Shown: positions 6,190-55,209 of the stretch, one piece after another | Layout: each line of letters begins with the position of its first letter | Position numbering within the stretch: the stretch's first letter is position 1 | From: Tubulanus polymorphus | Lineage: Eukaryota; Animalia; Nemertea | Assembly: GCF_964204645.1 (NCBI RefSeq) | Contig: NC_134031.1 | Coordinates: 17,925,910 to 17,989,909 of the forward strand | Reading direction: 5' to 3' | DNA: 64,000 nt | Notes under the pieces: generated by a model | What the model was told of the DNA's origin: nothing | The model's database searches: none | Seen by the model: only the letters and a program-made list of their open reading frames with translations | Translations under genes and position numbers: made by a program

Positions 6190-6524
6190 TTGTTCGTACC
6201 GGATGAAAGCAGACACTCACGCCAAACTAAAAATTGACAGAAGTTTGCAACACAAGAAAGAACAGACTGTGAAGATTTAACTTTTGTTTGAAGAAATATT
6301 CCAAGACCTCTACTTTGGAAAAATCTGTAAAAACCCCCGAGAACTGCTGAACAACCAAAGCATAATTATTCAATATTCATATTTTTTGGAATAAAAATGA
6401 GACAAGTTGTACTTCATAGGTTAACTGAAGCATGAGCTTTCGCCACAGAGGATAGTAGCTTCAACAGGTGAATGAGTATTTTTGGGTACATTTACTTGAT
6501 TACAAAGTTACATTTCTTTCATAC

Positions 6525-9500
6525 CTTTCTTTTGCCGGTTTGGCGAGATTTGCGTCAATCTTTATATCGTAGAGAATCATGTCATACAGGAATTTACCAA
6601 CAGCTCGTACAACACCAGGACTCCACTGTTTTTCACCTACATCCTATAAACATTTAACGAAATATGTTAACACTTTCTGCCAATTTACAAATTTCCTGAG
6701 TTTTCCCTGATTTTTCTGAGTGAATCAGAGAAATTTATAGGTTTAAAATCTAACAATTCATTCGTTTTTCATTGAATCGAGTATTAATAAAGAAATTGTC
6801 AATAACATTATCCAAATTCCCTACGTTTTCCAGGGTCTTGGTAAAATTTGTCAAAATTCCTCAAGCTTCCCTGATATTTTTCTCGATTTTTTGATTCATT
6901 GAGTTTTCCAGGTTTGCCACATCAGTAACTACCCTGTTTGAACAAGAAATGAATGCCAACTGCTTTGAAAAGAATCTGTGCTTACCAAATCTGGCCCGTC
7001 GGTGGATCTGTTATAAAGGTGGGTCCACATCTCGCGATGGTTTTTGAACAGCATTTTATCAGACGAATACAAATCGATGTATTCACCGTACAATTTCATG
7101 ATCTGTGAAACAACGACCAAAACCAAATTCAGATTAAAAGCTCAATACATGAAATTTTCATAAATTTTCAAATCAATATCCAAAAACTTGCAAAAGTTAG
7201 TTAGAGTTAACCAGTGGATAGTTGACATAATGATAGTTAAAGGTTTATTGTTATCATTGTATTCACCTGCTGGTTATCTTTTATCAACTATTCAGCAACT
7301 GCAGCCCAGGGCCCAGTTTCACAAAAAGGATTAACGCCTAAATCGATTTATGATAAACTGAATCAATGAAGAAATTAAATCGATTTAAGACTTAAACCTT
7401 TTTGTGAAACTGGGCCCAGGTCTATCATACCTTTTTAGTGTGTTTATTTCTGACTTTATCCTGTATGATAAACCGATCGAGCACTTTCAAACCCAAAGCC
7501 GTCCACAGATAACCGATTGTAGGACTATAAGTTTCAGACTCGGTAGAACGAAGGTTGATTTCCTAACGCGATAAAAAGAGAAATTCAGTCAATTAGGTTT
7601 CATTTGAATAAACAGCAAAATTATATTCGCTGTTTCAGGCACTGACCTTCATCATCAGATCGATATACTGAACCGGTTCAAGCGCTTTTAAGTAGGGGTA
7701 AATCGACAAGCTGTTGTTGGCTGAAAGAAGAAATATTCCCTTAAAATATTCAGAACAATGACCCGTTCAACCATCCTTCCTCGGCAGGGATTTGAACCTG
7801 ATGGCATCGCCTAACTCAGGGTCCATGTTTACGAAAAAATCTTAAGCTAAAAACAGTTAAGATCAGTTTTGACAACATAGAAAACAATAAATAACCAAAA
7901 GCAACTAAACCAAAGTTCGAAATTAACTTTTTTGAGAAACCATGACTTACAATCAGCTTTCTGTTTGAGAAATTTCAAATTCCGGTCGAACGCCTTCGTC
8001 AATTGTATTTTCCATTCTTTTTTCCACAAACCTAAAACGTCCTTCTAAAAACGTGTAATAATTTGAGATTATATTCTGATCTTCGATTGAAGTGATTACG
8101 ACGCACGATCAGCCCACACACGAAACGTACCATTTCTTTCATATATAGAGAATACTGAGGTAGCTTCTCGATGGATTCGACCACCACACCATCGGACATT
8201 TCAATATCCATTTGAGCTTTCGCTTGATGATGCAAAACATCTTTAGGTACGACACCGCCGTATGGATTCTCTTCAACGACCTGACAACGAAAATGAAATA
8301 TCAACAGACTCCCTACAGATCAGTCATTTCTGGATATAAGGAGTTTTCAAGGAGAATATTTCAAGTTAGCGTCTGCATCACTATCGTTTCCCAGTAGGAA
8401 AGACCAGAGGGTTCATCTCTCGATAGATCAAAGTAATAAGCTAGCCCAATAAATATTCTGACTTTCAACTAATAAATTTTTATAGGAATTCTTACATTTA
8501 CCGGGTAACAATACAAAACAAGATTGTAAAGTTCTGTTAACAGGCATGGAGACTATTAAAACAAAATTCTGGAGGAAAATGCACCAGCGCATCCCGGTGT
8601 TTTCCAAGACTTGGTTCCACAGTTGTGAGTTAACTCTGAGTTAAAATTAGTTCATTTTCAATTAGTGATCTCCGAGTCAAATCTTAACACGGAACTGCGG
8701 AACTGGGTCCAGGGCTTTATCAAACTCCTTGTTTTTTTCTCTGACAGTTTTCCACAATCACGGTCACCGTGTTCGCGCGAGGATTATCATTAAACTTACT
8801 AGTTCAGCAGGAAGCGGATGATGGTACTGTTCTAGGAGTATCGAAGCGGTGTATGTTTTCGGATCGAGCGGAGGATGAGGTATAAATTCCGGTATCACAG
8901 TCTGAATGGCTTTCAAAACCAAGGTTTTCTCGGTGCCGTTAAAACAACACGAGTTTAGCATATCTCTCACGTCGTAGCCCTTAAACAACAACGGTGGCAA
9001 AATAAAGATTTTCATTTAACCCTTTCAGTGTGTCTACACCGCAGTGCGGTGTATAAATCGGTGATGGATTATGGTAGAGTACACCGCACTGCGGTGTATT
9101 GATGTAATTATCTCTCTTGAAAAATGGCAGCACCTGTCAAACAAAGTGAACTATTCGAAACTAACGATACACCGCACCACGGTGTATGCGCACTATAGTG
9201 GTATTCCCATTATTCAACACACCAGGGAGGAATCTTCCAAAATCTTTAGATTATCTCCAGCACCATAGGGTATTGATTAGTCAGCACTGAAAGGGTTAAT
9301 TATCCTAAAATAGGGATTGTCCCTGTTATCTATTTGGTTGGTAAATTTCGTTTGATTTTTGATTAAGTTTCCCTTACAGACCCACCACACCCGCCGGGAG
9401 CGAAACAGGGGGTTTGATTTTTAAATAGATTTTAACGGTTCTTTAGTTTCCCCGACTTATTTCAACGGCTTACGTACGTCTCTTTCGATATCGGCTAGAA

Positions 9501-44514: not shown

Positions 44515-44864
44515 GTTTTCCCATTACCGCGAAAAAAAACGAAACCACAACGTAACTAAAATTCGAATTGTGGAACTTCTTCGATTATCTGAGTCAGAGT
44601 GCATATCAAAACATTACAGGTTTACGCACATATTCATTAAGGGGCCCAAGAGGAAATTTCACAGGCTGGCAAGGCTTGAAAATGAAAATCGTAAAGAACA
44701 AACAATGGAGAATACAGTCTAAGTGTCGAAAAATTCGGTTCATAGAATTTGATAAGATACGGGCCAAAGTTCCCGTATGGAGATGGGTATGACGATAAAC
44801 AGCTGTCATATTCTGTGTATTTTCAGAGACAATTTATCGTTTTAGAGAAAATTGCAATATAAAA

Positions 44865-45463
44865 ATGTCAAGAAAAAAAGATAAGGCATTATTCGAGGTT
44901 TTTGTTAGGGGATTACCACAATTAGTTAAAGAATAACAGCTGCGAGACTTCCTTTGGAATTCAGGTGGCGTGATGGTTACTGTCCTTATGATTTTTCCAA
45001 ATTATTTTCTTGAATTTCTAGTGTAAAGACATTATCTATCTAGAGTTGACGCGGATTCAAACTATTCTAAGACTTTCAAAAAAGTTTAAGGGATAGAGCT
45101 ACCAAAAATCATCAGGGTAGAAATAAAGGCTTCGGTTTTATTCAGTTCGAAGACGAGAGATCATTTGAAAAGACCATTAATCTGAAAGAGGTGGTGTAAA
45201 AAATCGATAATTGTAGCTTTATGGACATAGTCCTTGCATCATAGGATATCATTGGTCTTTTTTTATATATTCAGAAATTCTTTGGCAAGCCGTTGGTTTT
45301 TGTAGAATCAAACAAAGGTAAACGTAATTCGTCATGTTACAACCGGGATTTAATCATATTTCAATTTTTTAGAGCTTTCACCAAAACATGATTTGATAGG
45401 GTCGAATTTCTCGATTTCTAACGAAACTGATATCGGTAAACGAGAGCGACAAAAAAGTTCAAA
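44865..45463 (+). pseudogene. Pseudogenised duplicate of the RRM exons of the downstream ZNFX1-like gene
   Basis: MSRKKDKALFEVFVRGLPQLVKE*QLRDFL with in-frame TAA at 44934. The RNP1 exon NKGFGFIQF is frame-disrupted. The KFFGKPLVFVESNK exon and intron positions match 48523-48981. Confidence 0.85.
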
Positions 45464-47037: not shown

Positions 47038-48522
47038 GCGTGTCGAATGATAAAATCATTTTCTAGCACCCCCACTTCATCCCATCTCAAATCTAACTGG
47101 AATTGTGAATGCACTAAAATTGATATTAGATATTCTCACAAATATTATTAACTTCACTATCATAAATCATCTTCATAAAAATTTAGTTCTCTCAAAAAAT
47201 TGAAACGTTACTTTTTCTGTCAATCAAAAATAATTGTCTCGGTTAAAGCGAAACCGAGTAAGAAAATGTTTAGCACTATAAAACATGAAATATATGAGTA
47301 TTGCACGGGTAATTTACAGAATTGTTACAGTAACAAAAGATCAGTACCAGATTTTGATTTTTTCAGCAAAACAGGAAATCTATATTTATATAACATTACA
47401 TTATATTATATTATAGAAAATCTGTTTTTACTGATTTACATATTCTACGTACTAACAAAAGAATTAACCTTTGAAAATTTGCATTTATGCTATGCCTTCG
47501 ATACAGCCTTAGTTAAAATGTCAACTGATCTGTGGAGTAGTTAACATTTCCTGTAATTGATAAATTCCTGATAACCTTTTATTTCAGCCTGGCTGTAAAA
47601 TATCATCGCCAGTATATCTACACGATAACATAAAAATTCTACTTAGTCGAATCAGGGAAGTGTCACTGTTATTGGACGAATATACCACACATAATATCAC
47701 GTTTTATGCGGTGTAGCCTACAGAATATACAAAAACAACCACTCGCCAAAAATAAATGGCTTTAATTACTCTAATTTGTCACGTGTTGCTGGTTTCGTAA
47801 ATATATGAGCAATCATGACGTTCGTTTGGTGGTACATGATTTCTGTTTAACCTTTATTCAGTCTGATTACTCCGAGCCATTTACACAACCAGTAACACGC
47901 AGAGCGCGGTATGAGCGCGCGCGTCGACATGTAGAAACGACCGTAAGAATTCCGTTAATGATAAATGGGAAAATGTTCTTTAAAAAACCCGATGAAAACA
48001 TATGAGCCCTTAATTATGCATAAGAACTGTCGGTAGATCTATTCTTTTGATCCACAACAAGAAATGATAACAATTTTCCTGGCCCTCACCCTGTCCTAAA
48101 AAGTGGATGGTTGGCGGTGCTAAGCTGGTGTCAACCAGGTAGCGAATTATCACAGGCACAAAGATTCCCTCGGTGAAGATACAAAGTGAAGAAAAGTGTC
48201 CTTATTCATTTGATTGATCGATTGATCGATTGATTGATTAGGTGTAGACCTTACAAAAACCTGCTGAACAAACAGGAACTTCGATTTTAGTTGGATATAG
48301 TCGAATTAGTTTATAACATACGTAAACGTATCATAATAATTTTTTTTTAAAGTAAATTATATTGAGAGAAAGACACACTGTAGATACATTTGTGTAGAAA
48401 TTCGTTAACGAAATATAGACTGAAAGGTCGCATGGAGGGTAGGTGCGGCAGACAGTAGTCTGTCATGTTGTGTATATTTTCAGAAATCAATGATAAATGG
48501 TTCTTGAACAAAATACGAATAA

Positions 48523-51500
48523 AATGTCTGCAAAGCGAGATAAGCCGTTGTTCGAGGTTTTCGTCAGGGGGTTACCACCAGGTGTTCTAGAAGCACAACT
48601 TCAAGATTTCCTTAGGAATTCAGGCGGCGTGAGGGTAACTTTGAAATACGATTTACAAAATTTGTTCTCGTAAATTTCCAGTGCGAGAGCGTATGGGATG
48701 ACACAGATAAAAGTGTTTTTAACCAAAAGTGTTTGTTTTCAGACTCTTTCGATACAAATACCGAAATATCAGATGGGCGGAAATAAAGGTTTCGGTTTTA
48801 TTCGATTCGGGGACCAGAACTCATTTGAAACAGTTATTGCTCTGAATGGGAAGGTAAGATATTGATGAGTCTAGCTTTATAGACATGTTTTGCGTTTTAA
48901 GATGTAATCGGTTTGTTCGTTCTTTTTTTTTAATTCAGAAATTCTTTGGCAGGCCATTGTTATTTAAAGAGTCCAATAAAGGTATTCATAATTCCATAAG
49001 TTATAATCGAATTATTGTTTTTCATTTTAATCAGACGAGTCGAATGTTCTATAAATCAAATTCGATAGAACATTAATTAAGGAAATTGATTTGACAGGTG
49101 AAATTCCAGAAAGAAATTGCTCGATAAGTTTTGAAATAATTATGCGATATTTTTTGCCCGTTTCAATTTTAAATCTTTTTACAGTATGCCAAAAAACAAT
49201 TTAAAATCTATTTTTGGAAACAAAGCTTCTGTTTGTTCTAATGCAGCTAAACGTTCGCAACCAGTGAAGCAAAGTCGCATGATTCATGAAAACGCCATAC
49301 AGAGAATAGAGCATGGAGCGAGAAGAAATAAACAAAGAAATTTACGGTAATAAGTGATAATTACATTCTCAGCGAATACCGGTACGCTCTATATATTTTC
49401 TATGTTATTTTTCGTTTTTTCATATGTGAATATGTACATTTTTGCTTTCGCCAGGTTACTACGTAAGATCGATAAATTGCTGCATCCTTTGCTTGATGAG
49501 ATGACTGCACCAGAAATCTTCGTCTATTTGAAAGATAATCTGCCTTCATTAAAGGCCCTGATGGATGACAAGTTTATTTCTTCGGAAACGTTTGAAGTTC
49601 TCATTAAAGCTATACAATCAATTTGTGGTCAAAGCGAGGATTTGCCTATTTTACACGCTATTATCAACTCTACTATTTACAATCCAGCTGGCACAATAGA
49701 TAAATATTGTAATGATTGTAAGAAATTAGGACGCCTCGGTGATTTTCAAATCGGTACATTTCTGAATGTATTAAAATTGTCCAATGAAATTCTCAAGAGG
49801 CTTCCCAATCAGGCGCATCTTCGAATTATGTTCGTCATAAAAGGACTTGAGATCGCATTTGAGAAGATAGAAATGCAGAACACATATGTGCTAGGAGAAC
49901 TCGAACAATTGCAACAACTACATGATACCACAATTGTGAGGGTACTTCGACAAGAAGCACGTGATGAAGGGGCAGCGGAGAATGTTGATATATTACTTGG
50001 GTCTATACTACCTAAAGTTGAAGACCTTCGTATGAAACCACTGATTGATGAAAACATAGTTAATGGCTGTTACAAATCAACAACGCATTACCTTAGTACT
50101 CAATTTCAGCTGTTACGTGAGGATTTTATTCGCCCAATTCGTTCTGGAGTACAGCAGTATCTAGCCAGCTTCAGTGATAAAAAGAAAATTACTCGCCTCC
50201 AAGATGCCTTCATTTACCATGGTGTCAGGTTTGTTGAGACAGATTCGTTTGAAAAGACTCGTCTGCAGTTTGACTCGAGAAATCTACAGAGAGTTCGATG
50301 GCAGAATTGTAAACGGTTTATCTATGGTTCGCTTGTTTGTTTATCAGCCGATCGATTTGAATCGATGATTATTGCTACTGTGATGGATCGTGACCCAACA
50401 GAGTTGGCTCAAGGATACGTAGATGTGAAAATAATATCTGCGGTTTCATCATTGCCATTAAACTATGAAGAGAAACGTTATGTCCTCATCGAGGGACAGT
50501 CTTACTTCGAAGCATACCGTCATAATCTAAAACGACTTCAGTCTTTGAAAAGAGATTTTGATGCAGGCGTTGAGCTTCCATTCCGTGACTATTTTGTGAG
50601 TCCAAAGACTGTCACCGTCGCGCCACCTAAGTATCTGTCGATAAGGAAATCAGAGTCTATTGACAGTGTCACTGGCGAACCTCTTCTTGATGATATATTT
50701 TCTGATATAAATATGCATTGCTTAAGGTCTGATGACACAGAGATGCGATTGAAAGAATTTTTGGATTTTTCTAATTGGCCATCAGAGGAAAATTCATTTT
50801 TGGATACATCACAATTGGAAGCGTTACACCACGCATTAACACATGAGGTTGCAATTATCCAAGGTCCTCCAGGAACTGGCAAGACCTATCTCGGTCTAAA
50901 AGTAGTAGAATTCCTTCTTGACAATGAATCGGTCTGGGTAACCAAGGAGAAGAAGATATCGCTAGAGAATCCAAAAATGGCAACAAAATCTAGAACAAAA
51001 CAGTTTCAAGATAAAATCATGGTTGTCTGTTATACTAACCATGCGCTAGACCAGTTCCTTTCAGAGATATTGACGCTCTCTGAAATTAGATCAAAAGTGG
51101 TGGTTAGAATTGGGGGCAGATGCAAAGATGAAAAGTTGTTAAGCATAACACTCAAAAGTCATCGAAGAAATCATTATGGAAATAATGATAGAGATCTGTC
51201 AAAGATTGATAAAGGTTTGAGAGATGTGCAGGCAGAATCACAATACCTAAAATCACTGTTGAAAAATGTCGACGTGTTTAACATTACTGTGGGTGATTTG
51301 ATGCAACAAGTAGTTGCTGGACATAGACAACAATTTCTTGTTCCACGGTGCACCATTCAAGAAACAATTATTTATTGGATCTTGGATAAAGATATGGCTG
51401 TAGTCAACGCAAAGTTGAATGTGCAGAACGATGGTGAAGTGATTATTGAAGATATCCCAGATGAAGATATCCCATATGAAGAAAATATCCCAGATGAAGA

Positions 51501-54500
51501 TATCCCATATGTAGAAGTTATCCCAGACATTACAGATAAAGATATTGACAATGAACCGAAAGAAACGATGGAAATAGATGAACGGTCAACTGATGATGAA
51601 TCCATTGACGTCGTGGAAGAAGCGCAATTGATAGCCGATGAAAGGTTTATATATGATGATATACATAACGAGATATACGATAATCAGAATATTAAGAATG
51701 ATATAAGCCACTATGATAAAGAGCTATGGCGAAAGGAGATATATGATGCTCAGAATATTCAGAGTGATATAAGCCATTATTATGAAGAGTTATTGCGAGA
51801 TGCTAGGGCGCTAGCGAATACTTTTTGGCCAGCGAAAGATTTACTAAAAGAGCTCAATACGTTAGGATTACGGATCAAGGAGCAAAAACTGATAAATGCT
51901 GTCAATGATGGAAGCCCAAGGATGAACATGAACATTTGGTCTTTGAATATGGATGAACGTCTATCATTGTATTTGTCATGGTATAAGGCAACACGATCCA
52001 TCTGGCAAACCAAATTGGACTCGCTCGAGGTTATGGGTCTGTCGTTGCAAGACGAAAGGGAAAAAGCATATTCAGCTATGGACGAGTCTATTCTACAAAA
52101 TGCACATATCATTGCTATGACGACAACTGGTGCATCAAAATTCAGTCATCTGATAGAAGCAGTTTGTCCAAAGATCGTCATCGTAGAGGAAAGTGCTGAA
52201 GTGTTGGAAGCGCACATCGTCACGTCACTAACAGTCGGTTGTGAACACCTAATACTAATTGGTGACCATAAACAACTGCGACCAAAACCAACAGATTTCG
52301 AATTAGCTCGCGATTATAACCTCGATATATCGTTCTTCGAGAGGCTTCAGAAGAATGGCCAACCTATTAAAACTCTTCAATTACAGCATAGAATGCGTCC
52401 TGAAATCTCTCGTTTACTAGTACCACATATATATGAATCACTGATCGATCACGATTCTGTGAAAGATTTCGATGATATAAAAGGTTTTGACACAAATATG
52501 TTCTTCTTGAACCACAGTGAAAGTGAAAAAGCCGAAGTCGAAGGACGTAGTCATAGTAACGTTTTCGAAGCAGAAATGGTAAAAGCCTTGAGCAAATATA
52601 TTCTAATGCAGGGTTATCGACCAGACCAGATAACCATTCTAACGCCATACGTTGGTCAGATGTTTGCCTTAAAGAACATTTTGCCACCAAGGGAATTTGA
52701 AGGTATTCGAATTACTCCCATCGACAACTTCCAAGGCGAAGAAAATGATATCATAATTTTCAGTTTTGTGCGAAGCAACAAAATGGAGAATATAGGATTT
52801 CTGAATACGCAGAACAGAATATGTGTTGCATTAAGTAGAGCTAAAAAGGGCTTCTATTGCTTGGGAAACTTTAGACTCTACGCAAAGAAATGTCGAGTTT
52901 GGAGAGATATTCTTGCGGATCTCGAAGCAGCTGGAAAGATTGGAAGTCATTTGACGTTAATTTGTCAAAATCACCCAAATACAAAAACACGTGTGACGAC
53001 ACCAGAGGATTTTGATAAATGTCCATTTGGCGGCTGCCAAGAACGCTGTTCTACGATGACATGTGGCCATAAATGTCCATTTATTTGCCATATAGGCGAT
53101 CATGTGGACGAGTTTCGATGTAGAGAAAAATGTCTACGTAGTTGTGAAGCTGGCCATACTTGTAAAAAACTGTGTTTTGAAGAATGCTCTCCATGCCCAG
53201 AAGATTGCACTAAAGAAATAGAATGTGGCCATATATGTCAACGAAGATGTGGAGATGTTTGCACAACCCGCTGTATGATGGTATGTTCCAAAAGTCTACC
53301 TTGTTCCCATCAGTGTAAGGAGTTGTGCTATAAGCCTTGTAAATGTTCTGAGCCATGCGAGAAGGATTTAAAATGTGGTCATAGATGTGACAGACATTGC
53401 AGTGCTCCTTGTACGCCGCGTTGTACACGTCCATGTTTAAAGAGTCTACCATGCTCTCACCAGTGTAAGAAGTTGTGCTATGAGCCGTGTGAATGCTTTG
53501 AACCATGCGAGAAGCATTTAGAATGTGGTCATAGATGTGACAGACATTGCAGTGCTCCTTGTACGCCTCGTTGTACACGTCCATGTTTAAAGAGTCTACC
53601 TTGTTCTCACCAGTGTAAGAAGTTGTGCTATGAGCCGTGTGAATGTTTTGAACCATGTGAGAAGGATTTAGAATGCGGTCATGAATGTCGTAATCGTTGC
53701 AGTGTTCCTTGCACGACTCAATGCCGGATGCCATGTTCCAAGACTTTACTATGTGGACATCAGTGTACGAAATCGTGTTACGCTGCATGTGGCGAATGCT
53801 TGAAAGTCATTACAGTTGAACTAGAATGTAGCCATACTTTGGAAAAGGTTTGCCACAAAGAAGCAACACAGGCTGATTGTGAGGCGTTTATAAAAACAAC
53901 ATTGTCTTGTTCTCATGAGATGCGTGTAAAATGTTGCCAATTGCTCGATAAGGCATCTATCAAGTGCGATGAAATTGTTCCAAAAGCATTACCTTGCGAT
54001 CATCAAATGCAGGGGAAATGTGGTGAATCAACTGAACGCATAGATTGTCAAGTGAAAGTGAAATACGAATTGCAGTGCCGTCATGACAAATATATAGAAT
54101 GTTGGCGTTATACGAAATATGAAAATCAAACTAATGACCTTCATGGAGCCGACTTATACTGCAGTGTGATTTGTAAAAGAAAACTATTATGTGGCCATGA
54201 AATTATGGCTGAATGTTCACAAGATTTAACGAAACAATCACATTGCGAAAGAACGTGCGAGGCCAGTTGTTGGCACACAAGATGCCGGAAAAAGTGCAAT
54301 GAGCGATGCTGGGTTTGTCGTCGTCCTTGCGGTTGGGAATGCAGTCATCAAAGATGCTCTAAAGCCTGCTTTGAAGTATGCGACAGGAAGCCCTGCGACG
54401 AACCGTGTAATCAGAAGACTATATGCGGACATGACTGTATGGGTTACTGCGGTGAACCTTGTCCGTTGATGTGCGACAAATGCGGAACAGCAGCTGACCC

Positions 54501-55209
54501 ACCCAGTGAAAGAGATCGCTACGTGTCACTGTATCCTTGTGGTCACAGTTTCCTCAGGTCAGTCATTGACCAGCATATGAAAATCAAGCATCGAGGTGGA
54601 ATGAAAGTTGTGAATGTCCGTTGCTGTCCGTTTTCCAAATGCAGGAAACCTATTCTGTTTTGTCCGCGATATAGTCATGTAATCAAGGATTATTTCCATG
54701 CAAAATACTTCCTCCTTGGGAATGTACTCGACGGTGATTGGTTATGCTGCAAAAAATGTGGTAAGACATATTGAACAGTGCTTATTAATAATAACTATAC
54801 CATCTAGGTGAGGTTTCTACCATAGCAGTCGTGACCATGATTCTTTCATCTTTATTTCTGATGCATCGGCACGTCGTTGGGTCCATCGACATTTCATAGA
54901 AAATTGTTCATGTTTTACAGGTTTTTACATGGTTTCCGATCTTCAAGATCCTAAATGCGACCGTTGCGAGGGAGGATCACGCAGAAAGCAACCAAGACCG
55001 CTGAAGATTAGTAAGTAGACATGATAAGATTATTATATATCTTATAATAATTCTATCTCTATATATATATAATATAATTTCTTTCAGCACGCAACGAAAA
55101 TCCACCCCGTGGCCGTGGACGTGGACGTGGCCGTGGACGTGGCCGTGGACGTGGCCGTGGACGTGGCCGGGGATACGGGGGATACGCGAGGAACCCATTT
55201 CTCCGCTAG
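48523..55209 (+). CDS. ZNFX1: ZNFX1-family SF1 (UPF1-like) helicase with NF-X1 zinc fingers, N-terminal RRM and C-terminal RG tail (exons 48523-48634, 48743-48853, 48939-48981, 49247-49346, 49455-54760, 54921-55010, 55088-55209)
   Basis: QFQLLREDF, KRFIYGSLVCLSAD, YFEAYRHNL, QGPPGTGKT, VVCYTNHALDQF, IVEESAEV, LIGDHKQLRP, QHRMRPEI, DNFQGEENDII, RICVALSRAK and many L.CGH.C fingers. All six junctions are GT-AG and phase-consistent; the exon 4 acceptor is the least certain. Confidence 0.92.
53190..53800 (+). repeat. Coding tandem repeat, 132-bp (44-aa, two-finger) unit x~4.5
   Basis: PCEKDLECGHRCDRHCSAPCTPRCTRPCLKSLPCSHQCKKLCYEPCEC repeated; the central copies are nearly identical at DNA level. 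Confidence 0.9.

Follow-up and report, generated by a model that had tools for sequence, protein, structure and literature searches.

The 64,000-nt stretch of the nemertean Tubulanus polymorphus genome analyzed here (RefSeq assembly GCF_964204645.1, contig NC_134031.1, positions 17,925,910 to 17,989,909; hereafter, the window) probably carries an intact protein-coding gene for a derived ZNFX1-like helicase of superfamily 1 (SF1), in which the RNA helicase core is combined with an N-terminal RNA recognition motif (RRM), a relic of the RZ finger, and a C-terminal run of 11 Arg-Gly dipeptides, (RG)11. Read exon by exon, the gene lies on the forward strand, consists of seven exons, and encodes a ZNFX1-family protein of 1,960 amino acids (aa); the combined exon length is 5,883 nt, equal to 1,960 codons and a stop codon. 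All six introns are AT-rich, 77 to 265 nt long, begin with GT, end with AG, and contain pyrimidine tracts, and every phase fits. Each of the strings and coordinates listed in an initial annotation of this locus, made from the letters of the DNA, is present in the sequence, and its gene model was reproduced base for base. That annotation spoke of three short exons spliced to the helicase exon; three exons do encode the RRM, but the linker exon that its junctions imply was left uncounted. The features of the gene, in window coordinates, are as follows.

48524-48634, forward strand: exon 1, which opens with ATG and encodes RRM strand 1, including RNP2 (VFVRGL), and helix 1
48743-48853, forward strand: exon 2, with RRM strands 2 and 3, RNP1 (KGFGFIRF), and helix 2
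48939-48981, forward strand: exon 3, reading KFFGRPLLFKESNK, with the final RRM strand (KFFGRPLLF) and a phase 1 end
49247-49346, forward strand: exon 4, an R/K-rich basic linker of 33 codons
49455-54760, forward strand: exon 5, a 5.3-kb exon within a 1,806-codon open frame
50194-50493, forward strand: ZNFX1 domain, within exon 5
50800-52284, forward strand: AAA_11, within exon 5, carrying an insert with acidic repeats
52321-52869, forward strand: AAA_12, within exon 5
~52963-54345, forward strand: Cys-rich NFX1-type array, within exon 5
54346-54687, forward strand: Z-RING-like part, within exon 5
54727-54760, forward strand: first half of the RZ relic, at the end of exon 5
54921-55010, forward strand: exon 6, completing the RZ-like relic (C-x2-C at 54956-54967) and continuing into a basic stretch
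55088-55209, forward strand: exon 7, the tail with (RG)11 at 55108-55173 and the stop codon TAG at 55207-55209

The exons of the window gene were searched singly, and a close paralogue in the same genome (hereafter, the sister gene), whose RefSeq protein is naturally joined, served as the reference for full-domain tests. The Pfam RRM_1 profile matches exon 1 over profile positions 1 to 25 (16.9 bits) and exon 2 over positions 27 to 62 (21.8 bits, which alone exceeds the cut-off of 20.7). These matches are collinear, with the last strand coming from exon 3, and such a collinear match is far in excess of chance. Both pieces are also matched by a hidden Markov model (HMM) built from 30 RRMs, and direct reading finds RNP2 and RNP1 with their RNA-stacking aromatic residues. 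The full domain of the sister protein scores 41.1 bits against RRM_1; an AlphaFold2 model, made of this sister domain only, has the expected β-α-β-β-α-β order with a pLDDT of 83, and the PDB matches among the 50 listed by Foldseek are all RRMs, with TM scores from 0.71 to 0.80. The closest solved structures are the ordinary RRMs of Nop4, nucleolin, PABP, and hnRNPs. The full RRM claimed in the initial annotation is borne out by the collinear matches over exons 1 and 2 and by the retention of the cassette, free of indels, in the sister gene. The three small 5' exons carry a canonical single RRM, for which homology searches identified no donor gene.

The sister gene encodes the closest homologue of exon 5, RefSeq proteins XP_074655168.1 and XP_074655169.1 (isoforms X1 and X2), annotated as NFX1-type zinc finger-containing protein 1-like. 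It lies at 19.05 Mb on the same 21.6-Mb contig as the window gene (contig C7), 1.07 Mb away from it. In isoform X1 (XP_074655168.1), the same three-exon RRM cassette, with RNP1 reading KGFGFIQF, is joined to the helicase in the RefSeq model; isoform X2 begins after RNP2, so the 5' ends vary. In both genes, the RRM is spread over three exons and followed by the linker, a single large exon for the helicase, and a pair of small 3' exons, and the RZ relic is also present in the sister. The amino acid identity is 72% in exon 1, 86% in exon 3, and 83 to 90% in exon 5, depending on the measure used. The sister gene differs in having two linker exons in tandem where the window gene has one, 3.7 copies of a 50-aa zinc-finger unit versus 2.6, and an R/S/Y-rich tail without any RG run. 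In sister-locus coordinates, the duplicated linker occupies positions 7568-7654, both copies ending in R-x-L-R before GTAA, and, in the separate numbering of another sister sequence piece (L003), the tandem array of the 150-nt (50-aa) NFX1-type unit spans 1342-1893; the array of the window gene is at 53293-53682 of the window. An insertion of ~140 nt with an inverted repeat, perhaps a miniature inverted-repeat transposable element (MITE) or a short interspersed nuclear element (SINE) judging by its hairpin-like form, is located in intron 1 of the sister gene (6545-6688, sister-locus coordinates) and is absent from both RRM cassettes of the window (see below).

Exons 1 to 3 of the two genes align without gaps, and their introns show many indels. 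Where their splice sites align, they read GT/AG in the window gene and the sister alike, the sister exon-2 donor lying 3 nt further upstream. Over the 88 RRM codons, the synonymous divergence (dS) is 0.68 and the nonsynonymous divergence (dN) is 0.25, with a ratio (omega) of 0.37 (Fisher p 6e-4); by this measure, purifying selection acts on the RRM exons of both genes. The sister gene also conserves exon 6 together with its splice sites, and the acceptor context and first 25 nt of exon 7 are homologous to the annotated last exon of the sister, in the same phase. The two genes are duplicates of an ancestor that already carried the RRM.

The identification of the protein as a ZNFX1-like helicase stands. 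Exon 5 contains a ZNFX1 domain (PF25396, 85.8 bits, exon 5 residues 247-346) upstream of the helicase, followed by Pfam matches to AAA_11 (93.7 bits) and AAA_12 (140.9 bits). The Walker A sequence GPPGTGKT and the ATP-binding motifs are intact, the helicase core is 47% identical to ZNFX1 of the primate Pongo, and the equivalents of F1210 and R1216, which human ZNFX1 needs for RNA binding, are both kept. Acidic 15/33-nt repeats of the DIPDED type, with a 66-nt duplication, are found at 51447-51527 and 51670-51798; they sit within a long low-complexity insert in the helicase, which interrupts the match to AAA_11. The Cys-rich array downstream, of Cys-biased composition, aligns in BLASTP with residues 1264-1637 of Pongo ZNFX1 (E value of 1e-31), and the Pfam scan of this stretch returned no family at E values up to 10.

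Vertebrate ZNFX1 has been described as a dsRNA-responsive SF1 helicase with two E3 ubiquitin ligase activities, those of a Z-RING bearing the E2-binding F1575, the Zn ligands C1591, H1593, C1619, and C1622, and the linchpin Q1623, and of the RZ finger, with the catalytic C1860 and the base H1881 (bioRxiv 10.1101/2025.09.05.674436). This residue numbering was checked on a ZNFX1 homologue from the comparison set (P0117). The alignment of exon 5 with primate ZNFX1 stops at residue 1637. In the Z-RING-like part, each of the four Zn ligands has an aligned counterpart, Arg takes the place of the linchpin, and the position of F1575 falls inside a 10-residue gap of the pairwise alignment. Further on, the RZ relic keeps the Trp and the C...C-x2-C but has neither the Cys loop of C1860 nor H1881. 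The motif W-x2-C...C-x2-C is invariant in 11 aligned tails and in the window gene is completed only by the splice of exon 5 to exon 6. A true RZ domain further downstream was considered and ruled out, as the sole genome match to the RZ finger (PF20173) is at C7:2852140, next to the canonical paralogue discussed below; the tail of the sister protein also gave no RZ match at E values up to 10. The RZ finger of the window protein is thus vestigial, with the catalytic Cys and His lost.

No RRM_1 (PF00076) listing or RNP1 motif was found in any of the 119 other ZNFX1 homologues examined, which indicates that the fusion is new. Within the reach of the searches, the RRM-ZNFX1 combination appears only in the window gene and its sister, and in the automatic RefSeq model of the sister it was already present, unremarked. 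When residues 1-90 of the sister were searched among full-length proteins, the cluster of the sister itself was the only match. An exhaustive HMMER search with the RRM listed no other helicase among the best 150 of 3,676 matches, which were almost all proteins with several RRM matches; a distant ZNFX1 bearing just one weak RRM would fall below such a list, so this absence is partial evidence. The nearest clusters in the ESM Atlas list AAA_11, AAA_12, and AAA_19 and no RRM, which is uninformative given that only three families are shown per cluster. No paper describing a ZNFX1 with an RRM was found in the literature. The T. polymorphus genome encodes three further ZNFX1 paralogues, each in a single open frame of 1,772 to 2,012 codons.

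C7:2847285-2852256: ZNFX1 paralogue, single open frame, followed by a Pfam-level RZ finger
C11:4285117-4289799: ZNFX1 paralogue, single open frame
C3:24960113-24966149: ZNFX1 paralogue, single open frame

Neither tblastn nor a custom HMM run on six-frame translations detected RRM exons near any of these genes, within ~7 kb of upstream sequence for two of them and ~1.7 kb in the case of the C11 gene. Because it alone precedes a Pfam-level RZ finger, the paralogue at C7:2.85 Mb is probably the canonical orthologue. In a quick maximum-likelihood tree (50 rows and 1,422 columns, flagged with a long-branch warning), the window protein and its sister share a branch of 0.77 with a third Tubulanus paralogue and are excluded from the canonical clade of 24 rows, which spans ZNFX1 of vertebrates, amphioxus, molluscs, and arthropods and includes the Tubulanus C7:2.85 Mb and C11 genes. 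The neighbors of the pair, with a weak 58% support, are RZ-poor proteins of Lingula. This long branch outside the canonical clade agrees with the lineage-specific paralogue suggested in the initial annotation, and the window gene is accordingly classified, on the strength of the tree, as a divergent lineage-specific paralogue.

A second copy of the RRM cassette is located 3.6 kb upstream of the live gene.

44628-45415, forward strand: decayed RRM cassette, with exon 1' at 44865-44975, exon 2' at ~45091-45190, and exon 3' at 45275-45317

This copy is 90 to 91% identical to the promoter, exons 1 to 3, and part of intron 3 of the sister gene. It contains an in-frame TAA at 44934-44936 (codon 24 of exon 1'), has lost the acceptor of exon 2', and is one nucleotide short in the A-run of exon 2' at 45104-45108. 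These lesions rule out its use as an alternative coding 5' end or as a second, tandem RRM. The live cassette is only ~73% identical to that of the sister gene, yet fully open, and the death of the spare copy at 90 to 91% identity argues for selection on the live one. Divergence from the sister is uneven along the gene: the tract 49415-55025, with exons 5 and 6, is ~88 to 93% identical (exon 5 dS of 0.13), whereas its flanks are ~73% identical, with dS of 0.7 to 0.85. This pattern is most simply explained by a duplication of some age, after which exons 5 and 6 underwent gene conversion with the sister. The decayed cassette shows a divergence from the sister similar to that of the tract. Inside the tract, dS stays at 0.8 in an inner block (alignment codons 750-900).

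Use of an alternative ATG, which lies in frame at 48497 and is immediately preceded by a TAA, would give 9 more residues; as the sister gene lacks a corresponding ATG, 48524 is taken to be the conserved start. The upstream ATG and a 5-codon upstream open reading frame (ORF) at 48490 are found in the window gene only. A TGTATTTTCAGA block just 5' of the start codon is conserved in three cassettes (window 48470-48500, sister 6290-6310 in sister-locus coordinates, and window 44815-44830) and resembles a splice acceptor, so that a non-coding 5' exon may exist further upstream.

The terminal exon reads as the initial annotation claimed, T-RNENPP-(RG)11-YGGYARNPFLR-stop, with the tract in frame and terminal. 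In DNA, the tract is made of a CGTGGM hexamer and was recognized by the program TRF as a 6/12-nt tandem repeat at 55107-55173. The last-exon tails of the window gene and its sister align only at their ends. Runs of (RG)3 or longer occur in 14 of the 119 homologues (from fish, amphioxus, abalone, and others), in all cases within the N-terminal 250 aa, and RG/RGG-rich C termini in 5 (from Lingula, Antedon, Glandiceps, and Branchiostoma), so that an Arg-Gly low-complexity end is a recurrent trait of the family. The suggestion that both the RRM and the RG tail are foreign to canonical ZNFX1 therefore holds for the RRM fusion, seen only in the window gene and its sister among the homologues compared, but not for the RG tracts.

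A substantial, if minority, possibility is that a microsatellite within a disordered tail that evolves fast has expanded under selective neutrality, giving an RG tract that is functionless in itself and perhaps polymorphic in length. The hexamer periodicity with 85 to 92% matches, the homologous sister exon that has no RG run, and the highly diverged 3' flank outside the high-identity tract are all consistent with it, whereas the alternation of GGC and GGA codons indicates that the array is not perfectly young, and the RG/RGG-rich termini in several phyla suggest that the family tolerates or favors such tracts. It seems unlikely that the tract is instead symmetrically dimethylated by the arginine methyltransferase PRMT5 and read by Tudor proteins, directing the protein to germline nuage, there to act in small-RNA pathways together with the RRM, as Caenorhabditis elegans ZNFX-1 does in Z granules. 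The in-frame, terminal position of the tract fits this proposal, as do the clustered RG dipeptides in a disordered terminus, the kind of sequence typical of PRMT5/Tudor systems; uninterrupted C-terminal RG runs are PRMT5 substrates in Sm proteins (PMC2755859), and C. elegans ZNFX-1 is a germ-granule helicase (PMC9276528). However, the sister has the same RRM and no RG run, which places the tract outside the conserved design; the tract is a hexamer microsatellite; and the RG tracts of its relatives are mostly N-terminal, more in keeping with a generic module of low complexity than with a specific targeting signal.

The gene model itself could be wrong: the window gene might be unexpressed, transcribed in a form that lacks the RRM exons, exon 7, or both, or transcribed from the decayed cassette, which would leave the fusion to the sister gene only. 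Several observations count against an intact, functional gene. A search of transcript-derived protein fragments with the last 200 aa of exon 5 yielded one candidate and no match; the protein collection returned both sister isoforms and no protein identical to the window gene, which public annotation may leave unmodelled or treat differently; the E2-binding Phe of the Z-RING has its position within an alignment gap; and omega is 0.72 for exon 2 alone and 0.42 for exon 5, so that the constraint is moderate. A promoter and cassette resembling those of the sister lie upstream at 44628-45415, and sister isoform X2 starts past RNP2, a sign of variable 5' ends. On the other hand, even with a dS of ~0.7 across the RRM exons, all seven exons have stayed open and in phase and the splice sites are intact, whereas the unused cassette gained a stop and a frameshift at only ~9 to 10% nucleotide divergence, and the W-x2-C...C-x2-C motif is completed only through the splice of exon 5 to exon 6. 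A wrong model is therefore considered improbable, and an intact gene for the RRM-helicase fusion is preferred.

If the window gene is intact, its helicase can be expected to still clamp or translocate on RNA in an ATP-dependent manner, and the RRM could add affinity or selectivity for single-stranded RNA via the RNP1 and RNP2 aromatics. The ubiquitin transfer that vertebrate ZNFX1 carries out by RZ transthiolation would be lost, with at most an allosteric RING-like activity kept. The RG tract may have arisen by a recent microsatellite expansion within a fast-evolving tail already rich in R, G, S, and Y; it is most likely a generic RNA-binding or condensate-promoting element, comparable in its presumed role to the RG/RGG tracts at either end of other family members, and could be arginine-methylated, as are the Sm tails (PMC2755859). 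A bolder proposal is that this ZNFX1 has swapped its ubiquitin-ligase output for an RRM and a methylatable (RG)11, becoming an E3-independent RNA clamp at Tudor/PRMT5-dependent granules. This is quite unlikely; if true, it would be a new wiring of ZNFX1 into small-RNA pathways or antiviral RNA sequestration. In vertebrates, ZNFX1 connects the sensing of RNA with its ubiquitin-driven entrapment; in nematodes, the connection is with small-RNA memory. The gene pair, with a helicase core, a classical RRM, a lost transthiolating RZ site, and two different tails, is a natural variant of this system, and comparison with it may help to separate the functions that depend on the ligase from those for which RNA binding is enough. 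The locus also illustrates how a domain split over small 5' exons can escape notice when only ORFs are inspected, how a duplication can look younger than it is after gene conversion, and how a decayed cassette beside a live one can confuse gene models. The impact on the field will be modest unless expression and biochemistry follow.

Among the known systems, the C-terminal RG dipeptide runs of the Sm proteins SmD1 and SmD3, which are PRMT5 substrates (PMC2755859), resemble the tail of the window protein in being uninterrupted RG/GR runs at the extreme C terminus of an RNA-associated protein, although the folds are unrelated. C. elegans ZNFX-1, a germ-granule (Z-granule) helicase in small-RNA inheritance (PMC9276528), provides a precedent for condensate localization. 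It belongs to the same SF1 helicase family with NFX1-type fingers. The nematode protein is not known to contain an RRM. The paralogues from Lingula, Antedon, and Glandiceps (P0003, P0004, P0005, and P0051 in the comparison set) likewise lack a Pfam RZ finger and have Arg-Gly-rich C-terminal tails, but these tails are of the RGG/GGG type rather than a pure RG run, and the proteins contain neither the RNP1 motif nor an RRM. With vertebrate ZNFX1, the window protein shares the ZNFX1 domain, the helicase core, the equivalents of F1210 and R1216, the Cys-rich array, and the distal Zn ligands of the Z-RING, which align. It differs in the N-terminal RRM and C-terminal (RG)11, in Arg replacing the linchpin Q1623, in the unalignable F1575, in a missing spacer of ~200 residues, and in an RZ relic devoid of C1860 and H1881. 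Compared with vertebrate ZNFX1, it is therefore a non-canonical member of the family, and the canonical clade is represented in the T. polymorphus genome by the gene at C7:2.85 Mb.

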